Shown here: positions 1,941-64,000 of the stretch, piece after piece
How the letters are laid out: each line of letters begins with the position of its first letter
Numbering within the stretch: the first letter of the stretch is position 1
Origin: Oopsacas minuta
Taxonomy: Eukaryota; Animalia; Porifera
Reading direction: 5' to 3'
Assembly (NCBI GenBank): GCA_024704765.1
Contig: JAKMXF010000111.1
Location: 574,619 to 638,618, forward strand
DNA length: 64,000 nucleotides
Position numbers and translations under genes: made by a program
Notes under the pieces: model-generated
Database searches by the model: none
Told to the model about the DNA's origin: nothing
The model's input: only the letters and a program-made list of their open reading frames with translations

Positions 1941-2076
1941 CATTTGTATGGAAATAGGAATTCCCTCTAAATTATTGACTCCGTTTCCGAAAGTTCTGTC
2001 CATTCATGTAGGTAATACTGTAACCGATATATCCCATCTTTCACCAGTATTAATACTTTAATATTATACAATTAGC

Positions 2077-3213
2077 ATGGCACAGGAAGGCACCAAGGGT
2101 AAGCCAATCAGTTGTAAAGCTGCAGTGGTCTGGGAACCTAACAAAATGGTAATCGAGACCATCGAAGTAGCTCCTCCCAGTCGAGGAGAGGTCCGCGTCA
2201 GAATTCTGTACACCGGGGTTTGTCACACGGATGCTGTAACCCTCGGAGGGATTGATGCACAAGGAGTATACCCAGTTGTACTTGGACATGAAGGAGGAGG
2301 TATTGTAGAAAGTGTAGGAGAGTCAGTAGAGTCTGTAGTACCCGGAGATCATGTGATACCATTGTATATCCCACAATGTGGAGATTGTGATTACTGTGAT
2401 AGTGATAAGACTAACCTATGTCAGAAACTAGTAAAAACTCAGTATGCAGGATTTATGCCAGACGCTACGACAAGATTCACATGCAAAGGTAAGCCTATTC
2501 ACCACTACATGGGTTGTAGTACATTCTCTGAGTACACTGTTTGCTCTGAGATATCTCTGGCTAAGATAGACCCAAAAGCGCCCCTTGAGAAAGTCTGTTT
2601 ATTGGGATGTGGTATATCTACTGGTTACGGAGCTGCCCTGAATACAGCTAAGGTAGAGAGGGACAGTATATGCGGTGTATGGGGATGTGGTGCTGTAGGA
2701 CTAGCTACTATAATGGGATGTAAGAAAGCGGGTGCAAAGAAGATTATAGCTATTGACATAAACTCTAATAAGAAGGAGTATGCTCTTAAGTTTGGTGCTA
2801 CTGAGTTTGTTAACCCTAAGGACTTCACGAAACCGGAAAATGACACGTTTATAGAAATGACCGGAGGAGGATTTGACTTTACTTTTGAGGCAGTAGGTAA
2901 CGTTACATTGATGCGACAGGCCCTAGAGACTGCACACAAAGGTTGGGGTGTATCTGTCATCATTGGGGTTGCTCCCGCTGGTCAGGAAATATCCACTCGA
3001 TCTTTCCAACTCGTGACAGGCCGTGTCTGGAAGGGGACAGCGTTTGGAGGCTGGAAGAGTCGGGACAGTGTTCCTATGCTGGTGGATGAGTACATGAAAG
3101 GAAAACTTATGGTGGATGAGTTTATTACTCACAAACTACCATTTGAGGAAATTCACAAATCTTTTGATTTGCTACATAAGGGGGAGAGTCTAAGAACTGT
3201 CCTCACTCTATAG
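2077..3213 (+). CDS. ADH5: Alcohol dehydrogenase class III / S-(hydroxymethyl)glutathione dehydrogenase, intronless
   Basis: GVCHTD, GHEGGG, structural Zn motif CGDCDYC...[11 protein letters not shown], and class III C-terminal [22 protein letters not shown]. Confidence 0.95.
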
Positions 3214-3521
3214 CTATGAAACTATTAGTTCTTTCTACGAATTTATTTCTTAGTTTCTTACACAGAATAATCTTATAATTGTTCATTGATAAATAGTTCT
3301 TTTCAGTTTTGGTTTTCCAAAATAATAGAATTTGGTTCTTAATTATTCAGCTAATAATTCAAGTAACACAGATAATAACTGAATATATATTAACATATTC
3401 AATATACGATATGCTCCAGCTATGTCCAGTGGCCATACAATATTGTGACTCTAGACTGAAATAGGCATTTATTTGGAATCTTATAAAGTCAGAAATTTTC
3501 ATATACTTTTATACTATCAAC

Positions 3522-4628
3522 ATGTCAGGATTCGATTCGCGTAGTACGCTTGAAAAATATCTGTCACTCGACCAGAGGGGATTCGTCCAGGTGACTTATA
3601 TATGGATCGACGGGACCATGACTGGGTTACGTTGTAAGACAAAGACAATTGACTTCATCCCCAAATCCCCTGACGATCTCCCGGTATGGGATTACGATGG
3701 TTCTAGCACTATGCAATCAAACGGAACCAATTCAGATATATACATACGCCCTAAGGCTCTGTTCAGTGATCCATTCCGCGGTGACCCAAACAAACTGGTG
3801 TTATGCGAGACCTACACCCATGAGGAAAAGCCTCATCCCACCAATTCTCGTCACATATGCAATATGTACATGAGTAACCCAAAAGTGCAGGCAGCTCACC
3901 CATGGTTCGGTATCGAGCAGGAGTATACCATCATGAATAGGAACGGTCGTCCTTATCAATGGCCTGAAAATGGTTACCCCCCAGCTCAGGGTCCATTTTA
4001 CTGCAGTATTGGTGCTAGTCGTGTGCATGGACGCTCTATACTTGAGGCTCATTACCGTGCCTGTCTGTACGCTGGTGTGAAAATAGCCGGTTCGAATGCG
4101 GAAGTAATGCTCTCTCAGTGGGAGTTCCAGATTGGACCATGTGAGGGTATCGAAATGGGAGATCATCTTTGGGTGGCTCGGTTTTTGCTGGAGCGAGTTG
4201 CGGAGGATTTTGGTTGTGATATTTCCTTCGATCCTAAACCTGTTCAAGGAAATTGGAATGGCTCTGGAGCTCACACAAATTATTCTACCTTGGAAATGAG
4301 AGAGGACGGAGGGTTAGCTAAAATGTACCCAGCGATAGAGAGAATGGGCAAAAACCATGAATGGCACATAAAATATTATGACCCTCACGGGGGTGCTGAC
4401 AACGCACGGCGTCTTACCGGCCTCCACGAAACATCTGACATCCATAGTTTCTCTAGCGGGGTAGCAGATCGTGGCGCGAGCATAAGGATCCCCCGCCATT
4501 GCTCCAAGGACGGTAAAGGTTATTTTGAGGACAGACGACCCTCTGCTAACATGGACCCCTATGTGGTCACCGAGGTAATCGTGCGTACTACGATCCTCAT
4601 GGAAGATCACTCAGGAGTTAAAGTGTAA
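3522..4628 (+). CDS. GLUL: Glutamine synthetase type II, intronless
   Basis: [76 protein letters not shown]. Confidence 0.97.
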
Positions 4629-4977
4629 CAGACACATTCATAGCTCGTATTATATTTATTTTTTTTCCTTCATTTCTTCAGAGTTATTTTGCAATATAGA
4701 TTCATTTTGGTGTATATTACTTGAGTAGTTCAGTGAATATTATCTCTTGGGATATTTTTTCTTTGGAATTATTAACTCAACAGTCTATACTTTGTTACCA
4801 ATGATCGTGTTGTACACTGCAACAATTCGCACATGTCGTAAAAGTTGTAGAGTAATATTGACCTATGTGTCATAAAATATATTTCGTAACTAGAATTAGC
4901 TAAAGTGATAATTTAATTATCTAGCTGGCATTCTTATTGACGATACGTTTCTGATTAATCAGAAATTAGTACACTTT

Positions 4978-61609: not shown

Positions 61610-61996
61610 ATGATGTATCCTGTCTTACATTCAACTAAAGCTGAATTATTTCAGATTTGACATAAACCCTGGTGGAAGGAATATATACCTTTTGCTAGAA
61701 AGAAATGGATACCATTTGTAGACGGGGTAGTCGACATTCACCTATTTCTTGAGGAGCAATATAATCAATGTAGACTAATAGCATGTGATTCTAATCAGAA
61801 TATAGTATTAACTTGTGATTGGCAGTTCGTGATGAATTTTACTAAAGTTTCAAATATTTCCTGTAAAACAAATGGACGTGAGAAATGTGGGCTGAGTTTC
61901 AGCTCAGAAAATGAGCTCAATCAATTCCTTGAGGAGTTTGAAAAGATTAAAAAGCGGTTTAGGAGGTTCATATATTCACACCGTTACACAAGCTAG
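61610..61996 (+). pseudogene. Homer-like EVH1/WH1 domain ORF with one in-frame TGA (not in the ORF track)
   Basis: MMYPVLHSTKAELFQI*HKPWWKEYIPFARKKWIPF...CRLIA...MNFTKVS...GLSFSSENELNQFLEEFEKIK resembles Homer PIFSTRAHVFQI..KKNWVP..MTFTKTS..GLGFSSEHHL. TGA at 61658-61660. Confidence 0.6.
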
Positions 61997-62181
61997 ATTA
62001 TTTCCTTTATAGTTTAGCTCTAATTTTTGTATTTTCTTATATTTTATTTTTGTGTGTTCTCCACTTATAATATTTCAAAAATTTATAATTATTAATATAC
62101 TTCCATATACGGATACATTATTAGCTGTGGGTGGTCTAGTTAGTTACAAGTGAGTACAGGCAGAATACATTAGTTTGACTG

Positions 62182-63348
62182 ATGGCAGACACACAAACAA
62201 GTAGACCTGAGATTAATGGTAGTGTCCATCTATCCTCACAACCTGAGACAAGCATCATAAGACAAGGTTAGTATTTATAATAATTTCTAGAGAAATTGTT
62301 TTACCCTCTCTTCTTAAAAGTGAGATCCATCCTCTACTGGGAGAACACTTTCACAAGTATCTGCTCTCTCCTGATAACATTAATGATATTACAAACCTTC
62401 AGTTTCTATCCTGGTATACATGCTACTCTGTTAGTACTGTTGGGAAGTTACACAGCATCTCTGCTATTTATTTTATCCTTCATCATATACTGTGTAGTTG
62501 TTGGTAGAGAGCCACACAACCCATTCAAGTGAGCTACAGTTATTTATTAAACGAGCCTTTGGCTCGTCGCTTCGCGATGAACTCCGCGCATTGCGCCTCG
62601 AGGTATTCAACAGACAAACAAACAGACAAACAACAATTGAGATGTAATAACATTGATGTTGTTTACATTATTCAGACTCAGCATACTCGATTACCCCAGT
62701 ATAGTCGTTGAAAGCATGATTCTACCTCAATTTTGAAATTTGTTTACTTTATATTCATAAAAACAACAATAAATTTACATATGATTAATCCAAAAGTGTG
62801 AAAATCGGATTCAGCATTTTCGAAATTTTTAATAAAGTTTTATTGAATTATTATTACTTCCTTGATAAACACGATAAATACATAGTTATGCTACAATTTC
62901 AAAATTGCATACCATAAATCCTTCCTTGACAACACGGACAAACAAACAAACAAACAACAATTGAGATTTAATAATATAGATATTTAAATGGTAATTGTAA
63001 TCTCTATCCCTTTCTTGTAGTGTTTGGCTATCTGACTTTAAAGTAAATACAGGTTGGGTAAGTTCTCTCATTTCTTAACTCAAATAAATACAAATAAATT
63101 CAATAAACTCTTTCAGATTTTGAATCAGCTGGGTATACTATTAGACTTGATATCACCTTATTTTGTATCTTCATTGAGACTGATATTCTTCTTCAATCTC
63201 AAAGATTCCTTAACAGTAAGTTATCTCTGTTAGGTTATACCAGACCCTGGAGAATACATTAATAGTATTATATTATAGGTAATGACACTACTTTGGATTA
63301 TGAGTTATTTTTCATCCTATATCTCTCTGCTAGAAATAACCTACGTAG
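62182..63348 (+). CDS. RTN: Reticulon-domain protein, multi-exon; 3' end unresolved
   Basis: VRSILYWENT...HNPF|N, LRLIFFFNLKDSLT, VMTLLWIMSY. Exons 62182-62266, 62291-62528, 63021-63057, 63117-63215 and 63279-63348 join in frame. Confidence 0.8.
62547..62980 (-). mobile_element. Non-autonomous Helitron-like element in the reticulon intron
   Basis: Minus-strand 5' end A|TCTATATTATTAAATCTCAATTG followed by a (TTTG)n run. 3' GC hairpin ACGAGCC-AAA-GGCTCGT, then TTAA|T (a non-canonical CTRR). No TIR or TSD. Confidence 0.6.
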
Positions 63349-63447
63349 GTTAGTTTATTTATTAAAACTGTGCTCATTAACTCTAATATATTCATTGTTT
63401 AAAGTGCAATTACATAGTTTGATTATACATAGCTCATTAGCACTGTA

Positions 63448-64000
63448 ATGAGAATCAGACTCATAAAGTCTACATTCCAACTATCACTACAGCTTCTAGA
63501 GTCCCGGGTTGGTACTCGTGGTGTTAAGATCTACACTAAGACAGGTGACAAGGGTTTAACAAGTAATTACGTTGGAACTAGAATACCGAAAGATGACGTC
63601 ATTATAGAAGCATTGGGTACTACAGATGAGTTATCGTCTCAGATAGGCTTAATACGTGCCTGGATAGCCAGGATACACTCCAACAATTCAGATCATCAAC
63701 ATCTCCTCAAACTACTAGCTAGTGTACAGTGTCATCTACAGGATATAGGTAGTCATATCGCTACGCCTCCTGACACAAAGCAAGCTGGTACACTGCCTGT
63801 ATTCAAACCAGAGCTTGTGAAAGAGCTGGAATATGAGATAGACGAGATGACGTCACGACTCCCTCCTCTCAAACACTTCATCCTACCAGGTGGTGGAATG
63901 ACAGCTGGGTATCTACATGTAGCTAGGTCTGTGTGCAGGAGATCGGAGAGGAGGGTTGTGCCCTTGATACGAGCGGGAGAACTGTCTGATAGAGTAGGCG
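63448..64000 (+). CDS. MMAB: Cob(I)alamin adenosyltransferase (PduO-type), runs off the window end
   Basis: KIYTKTGDKG, EALGTTDELSSQIG, VQCHLQDIGSHIATP, LPPLKHFILPGGG, HVARSVCRRSERRVV. Confidence 0.95.
   Translation, partial: MRIRLIKSTFQLSLQLLESRVGTRGVKIYTKTGDKGLTSNYVGTRIPKDDVIIEALGTTDELSSQIGLIRAWIARIHSNNSDHQHLLKLLASVQCHLQDIGSHIATPPDTKQAGTLPVFKPELVKELEYEIDEMTSRLPPLKHFILPGGGMTAGYLHVARSVCRRSERRVVPLIRAGELSDRVG

Follow-up and report, generated by a model that had tools for sequence, protein, structure and literature searches.

Many of the mRNAs encoded in a 64-kb stretch of glass sponge DNA are very probably matured by spliced-leader (SL) trans-splicing, with a short leader joined at unpaired 3' splice sites near the AUG. 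The stretch, called the window below and meaning the whole of the 64,000 nucleotides analysed, is nuclear DNA of Oopsacas minuta. Exact matches of its encoded proteins place it at 574619-638618 of contig JAKMXF010000111.1 (NCBI assembly GCA_024704765.1), and the contig prefix, JAKMXF, is that of the whole-genome project named in the genome paper of this species (PMC10280926). For three neighbouring genes, encoding a peptidyl-tRNA hydrolase (PTH2), the GTPase MTG1 and a CRYZ-like reductase of the zinc-ADH family, we show leader joints in RNA. The foreign leader is joined at an AG in all three genes and occurs neither in the window nor in the flanking sequence, and these transcripts are therefore trans-spliced. 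We infer that other YAG trinucleotides (TAG or CAG) near start codons are also acceptors, that a typical SL RNA is the donor, and how large a share of genes takes part. The mechanism was known before; we add an instance of it at the level of one species and give the exact sites.

Leader joints in RNA at three neighbouring genes

A region of 5.9 kb (36700-42600) was compared with the assembled contigs of sequencing runs, five of which had matching sequence; each joint is seen in one contig. Run X4 is RNA, since its depth is very uneven (~150 to 46,000), its adapters are TruSeq and it contains GT..AG joints. Runs X2 and X3, from the same sample as X4, are DNA, with a flat depth of ~100x and ends in Nextera adapters only. 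These types agree with the RNA-seq, DNA-seq and Nextera mate-pair libraries of the O. minuta genome paper (PMC10280926).

The first-pass annotation of the window, made from sequence, had proposed that YAGs just before start codons are outron acceptors and that RNA should carry a common leader at these AGs. Three X4 contigs do open with one common foreign sequence, ...AAAAAACTTAC(AG), right before a genomic AG of PTH2, MTG1 and CRYZ. The number of foreign letters visible is 9 for PTH2, 21 for MTG1 and 11 for CRYZ, and the longest view covers 21+2 nt, ...AAATCTTCATAAAAAACTTAC(AG). In PTH2 the acceptor is CAG 38123..38125 (+ strand): the contig aligns from 38122 and is preceded by foreign AAAAAACTT, and the genomic ACAG, followed by C, overlaps the leader end ...CTTACAG. 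The joint lies 21 nt before ATG 38147, and two ATGs directly upstream of the acceptor (38113-38120) lie in the outron. In MTG1 the acceptor is TAG 38593..38595 (+), with the contig aligned from 38594 after foreign AAATCTTCATAAAAAACTTAC, the genome reading AG followed by G, and the joint 10 nt before ATG 38606. The CRYZ acceptor, TAG 39779..39781 (+), is used by a contig that aligns from 39780 after foreign AAAAAACTTAC, with genomic AG followed by T; the joint is 7 nt before ATG 39789, the first AUG after it. All three joints are at canonical AG 3' splice sites. The visible leader contains no ATG, and in 3/3 genes the first AUG past the joint coincides with the first ATG of the long open reading frame (ORF).

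The simplest account of the three contigs is one leader ending ...AAATCTTCATAAAAAACTTACAG, whose final 2-4 letters coincide with the acceptor. We rejected a leader end at ...TTAC, as the MTG1 joint would then follow GT, which is not an acceptor. The leader sequence, which we take not to be an Illumina adapter, did not turn up in the 64-kb window when up to 3 mismatches were allowed, and seven loci covering ~112 kb (the window plus stretches further along the same contig) gave no 17-mer match, so it is not an upstream cis exon.

Under the proposed mechanism, an SL RNA transcribed elsewhere, presumably capped and with a gene of its own, would donate its 5' exon. The spliceosome would join this leader to the first suitable YAG past a putative branch point in the AT-rich sequence that precedes the coding part, with the acceptor being mostly TAG, sometimes CAG, and a few to ~25 nt before the start codon. 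The outron would be discarded together with any AUGs in it, such as the two just before the PTH2 acceptor. The leader would then supply nearly the whole 5' untranslated region (UTR), and translation would begin at the first AUG, 7-21 nt past the leader.

Only part of the first-pass proposal about outron acceptors stood at the level of single sites. Trans-splicing occurs at the three genes, and CRYZ, alone of the three, uses the YAG that had been predicted, while the joints of PTH2 and MTG1 lie upstream of it, at 21 and 10 nt from the ATG. The TAG abutting the MTG1 ATG (38603..38605, +) and the TAG 6 nt before the PTH2 ATG (38138..38140, +) are not acceptors in the RNA contigs, among the contig ends listed, and may be alternative acceptors.

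YAG trinucleotides before start codons

The genomic footprint of trans-splicing was measured as TAG or CAG located 0-8 nt upstream of an ATG. The first-pass annotation had counted such a YAG at 16 of about 26 starts, and our recount of its start codons gave 16/27. All of the examples that it named are present in the sequence, with a gap of 0 for MTG1, a gap of 1 for ADH, AASDH, NHL, SLC37 and FAM13, and gaps of 4-8 for the rest. The alternative methionines that it picked for SLC37 (9487) and anoctamin (58340) are those of the deposited annotation, as is CHAF1B 6540, and the alternative methionine of FAM13 (46607) is consistent with a 914-aa product with a 59-nt intron. An EVH1 ORF said to carry a YAG was not found within the window; a WH1 gene begins ~700 nt beyond its end, with a TAG 9 nt before its ATG.

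Because YAG is common by chance, found in 30% of all 11-nt stretches and in 33-34% of those preceding any ATG, we used two sets of starts chosen blind to the motif, namely the first ATG of each ORF and the deposited gene calls. Among first ATGs, 11/24 had a YAG, compared with a mean of 6.1 in dinucleotide shuffles of their own 60 upstream nucleotides (P=0.015). Deposited starts within the window had a YAG in 14/25 cases, compared with a rate of 0.34 before any ATG (p=0.02) and of 0.234 in bins 27-89 nt upstream of the same genes (p=4.5e-4). Across the ~112 kb, the count was 25/42 deposited starts against 0.235 in distal upstream bins (p=6e-7). This set of 42 leaves out FAM13, whose deposited start was unlisted, and two calls that are probably second halves of split host genes, L007:2250 and L006:23658 (L006 and L007 being two of the loci further along the contig).

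Occupancy by YAG drops with distance from the ATG in the 42 starts, with 25, 17, 10, 9... in successive 9-nt bins, and the pile-up is significant in the final 0-17 nt. TAG prevails over CAG (18/42 versus 7/42 starts). We saw no enrichment upstream of starts for TAA, TGA, AAG/GAG (RAG) or the reverse-complement trinucleotides (CTR), and ATG is depleted within the final 17 nt in the same set. The gaps between YAG and ATG are spread over all three frames (4/10/7), and in 30/42 starts a YAG lies no more than 26 nt away and no ATG separates the two. We conclude that the YAG excess before starts is real but moderate. An artefact of in-frame stop codons was rejected, given that YAG gaps occupy every frame and TAA and TGA are flat. 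RAG was likewise rejected as an acceptor class: AAG or GAG occurs near YAG-less starts (TMEM132, PID, HERC, TSPAN and UBL2), yet in only 10/42 starts against 0.163 (p=0.14).

The thirteen other sites of the first-pass annotation are acceptors predicted from sequence. In the first 10 kb, all on the + strand, predicted acceptors are TAG 2073..2075 for ADH (1 nt before ATG 2077), TAG 4967..4969 for the F-box gene (8 nt before ATG 4978), TAG 6532..6534 for CHAF1B and TAG 9483..9485 for the MFS/SLC37 carrier. The CHAF1B site is 5 nt before ATG 6540, the second methionine and deposited start, and 54 nt past the F-box stop; its use would remove ATG 6528. The SLC37 site is 1 nt before ATG 9487, also the second methionine and deposited start, which has two further TAGs at 8 and 16 nt. 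On the - strand, candidates are TAG 20090..20092 for the NHL-repeat gene (1 nt before ATG 20088) and TAG 58349..58351 for anoctamin (8 nt before ATG 58340, the deposited start). The remaining predicted acceptors, again on the + strand, are TAG 30542..30544 for the amidohydrolase (6 nt before ATG 30551), CAG 42013..42015 for a ubiquitin-like gene (4 nt before ATG 42020, with no loose RNA end here among those listed), TAG 43401..43403 for AASDH (1 nt before ATG 43405), TAG 46603..46605 for the FAM13-type RhoGAP (1 nt before its second ATG, 46607), CAG 58798..58800 for KCTD/BTB (7 nt before ATG 58808), TAG 62171..62173 for reticulon (8 nt before ATG 62182, the deposited start) and TAG 63438..63440 for MMAB (7 nt before ATG 63448).

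Points against trans-splicing and alternative explanations

Several points weigh against SL trans-splicing. RNA-verified acceptors number only three, all within 1.7 kb, and come from assembled contigs, one each, rather than raw reads. Two of the three joints are not at the YAG nearest the ATG, which makes the nearest-YAG count a rough proxy. For about 40% of starts, no YAG falls within 8 nt of the ATG: in glutamine synthetase, POT, RUS and UBL2 a YAG occurs at 14-29 nt instead, other YAG-less starts have only AAG or GAG nearby, and the gene starting at 25645 lacks any AG within 45 nt. Another X4 contig, 39295-39794, is colinear across the CRYZ acceptor, which is compatible with precursor or read-through RNA and proves neither. 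Lastly, a true SL RNA gene would hold the leader exon, a GU/GT donor, an Sm-like site of the AAUUUUGG type and stem-loops, probably in several copies. Scans with the 23-mer of the leader, and with a 22-mer including an assumed GT donor, found no match, and no SL RNA gene with GU donor and Sm site, in collections of metagenome and prokaryote contigs; sponge DNA is probably not in these collections, and such blanks carry little weight.

The alternative that survives best is that the acceptors mainly cut polycistronic transcripts, with POT>PTH2>MTG1>CRYZ and F-box>CHAF1B being operons, and we regard it as unlikely. The genes in each chain share a strand and are unrelated to each other, and downstream genes do receive the leader. 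A stop is separated from the joint that follows by 121, 71 and 165 nt in the POT chain, and by 57 nt from the predicted joint in F-box>CHAF1B. The colinear contig 39295-39794 runs from inside MTG1 over the spacer into the CRYZ start, but a contig across two genes does not prove a single molecule. An AATAAA (39612-39617) overlaps the MTG1 stop and an AATAAT (38520-38525) the PTH2 stop, so each gene may end alone. Genes that follow a divergent neighbour (NHL, KCTD and ANO) show the same YAG, and the SLIDR/SLOPPR paper states that operons are unreported in these groups (PMC7986045). The signals over the MTG1 and PTH2 stops also suggest very short 3' UTRs.

A broader proposal would combine both processes: most O. 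minuta genes would be SL trans-spliced within ~25 nt of the AUG, and co-oriented chains with spacers of 57-165 nt, as well as same-strand genes nested in introns (MMAB in reticulon), would come from shared precursors resolved by the leader. We hold this combination to be doubtful. If the shared precursors are real, O. minuta would provide the first sponge example of operon-like units.

It is considerably less probable that most YAGs act in cis, as acceptors of short introns in 5' UTRs or of internal exons mistaken for gene starts. One such case is demonstrated, in the POT-family gene. A single X4 contig holds both of its joints, 37204>37254 (cut +2) and 37605>37667, which remove GT..AG introns of 49 nt (37205..37253, +) and 61 nt (37606..37666, +; acceptor TAG 37664-37666). 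The three exons (36005-37204, 37254-37605 and 37667-38004), translated one at a time, are open and in frame, and the deposited 603-aa model spans them. The ORF at 37669-38004 is thus the last POT exon, and its 'ATG' 37669, 2 nt after TAG 37664-37666, is not a gene start. Beyond the window, a strong pyrimidine tract precedes the deposited 'start' L007:2250, which probably opens the second half of ASCC3. The small size of the introns here, 49-61 nt, also fits this explanation. Against it, the leader at three true gene starts occurs nowhere in ~112 kb, and most starts open complete domain architectures. We attribute a minority of YAG-before-ATG cases, with TAG 37664-37666 the one demonstrated, to ordinary cis acceptors of internal exons. 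The tiny introns with GT..AG ends probably include a third, of 59 nt, at ~46900 in FAM13, whose 914-aa product fits a start at 46607 plus this intron.

Least credible of all is that YAGs have no splicing role and simply follow from an AT-rich composition upstream or from stops closing upstream frames. In its favour, the background in random 11-nt stretches is high (30-34%), and within the window the first-ATG rule reaches only p=0.09 when compared with the any-ATG background. Against it, the enrichment is specific to YAG and absent from TAA, TGA, RAG and the reverse complement, YAG occurs in all three frames with its peak adjoining the ATG, and the RNA leader joined at three such sites contradicts this explanation for those genes.

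Known SL systems, gene models and neighbouring features

The first-pass annotation noted that SL trans-splicing has been reported in glass sponges, and the literature bears this out. The SLIDR/SLOPPR paper counts hexactinellid sponges among lineages with SL trans-splicing, with Douris et al. 2010 as its cited source, and notes operons as unreported there (PMC7986045). In the Aphrocallistes vastus genome paper, a leader motif of ~37 bp is reported in 4% of long cDNA reads (PMC10282587). SL trans-splicing goes unmentioned in the O. minuta genome paper (PMC10280926), and the literature searched contained no description of an Oopsacas leader. A. vastus, of the same class, shares the mechanism, its mRNA 5' ends having in common a short leader without a colinear match. 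The A. vastus motif occurs in only 4% of long reads and its sequence is not given in the text of that paper, whereas for O. minuta 23 nt of the leader 3' end and exact acceptor positions were obtained. The genomic footprint in O. minuta suggests that half or more of genes may take part.

Other animals show similar systems with distinct features. SL1 of C. elegans is alike in having an unpaired 3' splice site near the AUG, a discarded outron, a YAG acceptor and a leader that makes up most of the 5' UTR. The nematode leader is unrelated, its U-rich consensus UUUUCAG differs from the AT-rich context and TAG preference (16 TAG to 5 CAG) in O. minuta, and resolution of operons of the SL2 type would be hypothetical in O. 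minuta. The tunicates Oikopleura and Ciona resemble O. minuta in having compact, gene-dense genomes, tiny introns and an SL close to the start codon, but tunicate operons are backed by polycistronic transcripts, while the O. minuta chains are candidate operons. An Oikopleura SL is treated in a preprint (bioRxiv 10.1101/353979). SL addition also occurs in ctenophores and hydrozoans, likewise non-bilaterian (Derelle et al. 2010, cited in PMC10282587), but these are other lineages with other leaders, and a shared origin is debated. Sponges lie near the animal base, and the extent of SL use and its polycistronic role bear on ancestral versus repeated origin of SL trans-splicing.

Exact acceptor sites and a concrete leader end are now available for O. 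minuta, in which the leader is almost the whole 5' UTR. In practice, the true start would be the first AUG past the acceptor. Several deposited gene models look wrong when judged by this rule and by their domain content. The CRYZ model starts at 39831, and with the leader joined 7 nt before ATG 39789 it is short by 14 codons. AASDH is deposited with a start at 43697, but in the ORF from 43405 residue 18 already belongs to the AMP-binding domain, its first residue, and the model looks 5'-short. The glutamine synthetase model also looks 5'-short, as its start at 3711 removes the Gln-synt_N match (region 3522-3711). One deposited model, with a product of 347 residues, joins reticulon to MMAB (62182-64000, on into L006:5717-7900). 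The MMAB ORF (L006:6983-7624) is complete in itself, at 213 aa, and has a TAG of its own at 7 nt from the ATG, and reticulon-like membrane sequence resumes after it; MMAB looks to be nested on the same strand within a reticulon intron.

The window has a G+C content of 38% and is crowded with long ORFs that, by the ORF list and domain matches, encode ordinary animal proteins. Besides PTH2, MTG1 and the CRYZ-like reductase, these are a zinc-ADH, glutamine synthetase, an F-box protein, CHAF1B and an MFS/SLC37-like carrier; a TMEM132-like giant, an NHL-repeat protein, a PTB protein, an amidohydrolase and a HERC-type ligase; a POT-family transporter, a tetraspanin and two ubiquitin-like proteins; and AASDH, a FAM13-type RhoGAP, a RUS-family protein, anoctamin, KCTD, reticulon and MMAB. 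Scans for tRNA and Rfam families found no match in the 64-kb window. The first ubiquitin-like gene (42020-42448) has a word depth of ~45,000 in the RNA run, ~100x that of its neighbours, and is followed by the second (42700-43266). A lookup of transcript contigs by ubiquitin-like protein returned solely the NCBI genome assembly contig.

A further run, X5, carries a different organism label and study. Over 36835-40863 it matches coding parts only, at ~95-99% identity, and its sequence diverges from the window at gene ends. This pattern suggests a close relative or a divergent population, and the X5 sequence would serve to test acceptor conservation. ORFs matching a Mariner/DDE transposase (54794-55947, minus strand) lie inside the span of the anoctamin gene (51530-58340) and are probably a transposon remnant within an anoctamin intron.

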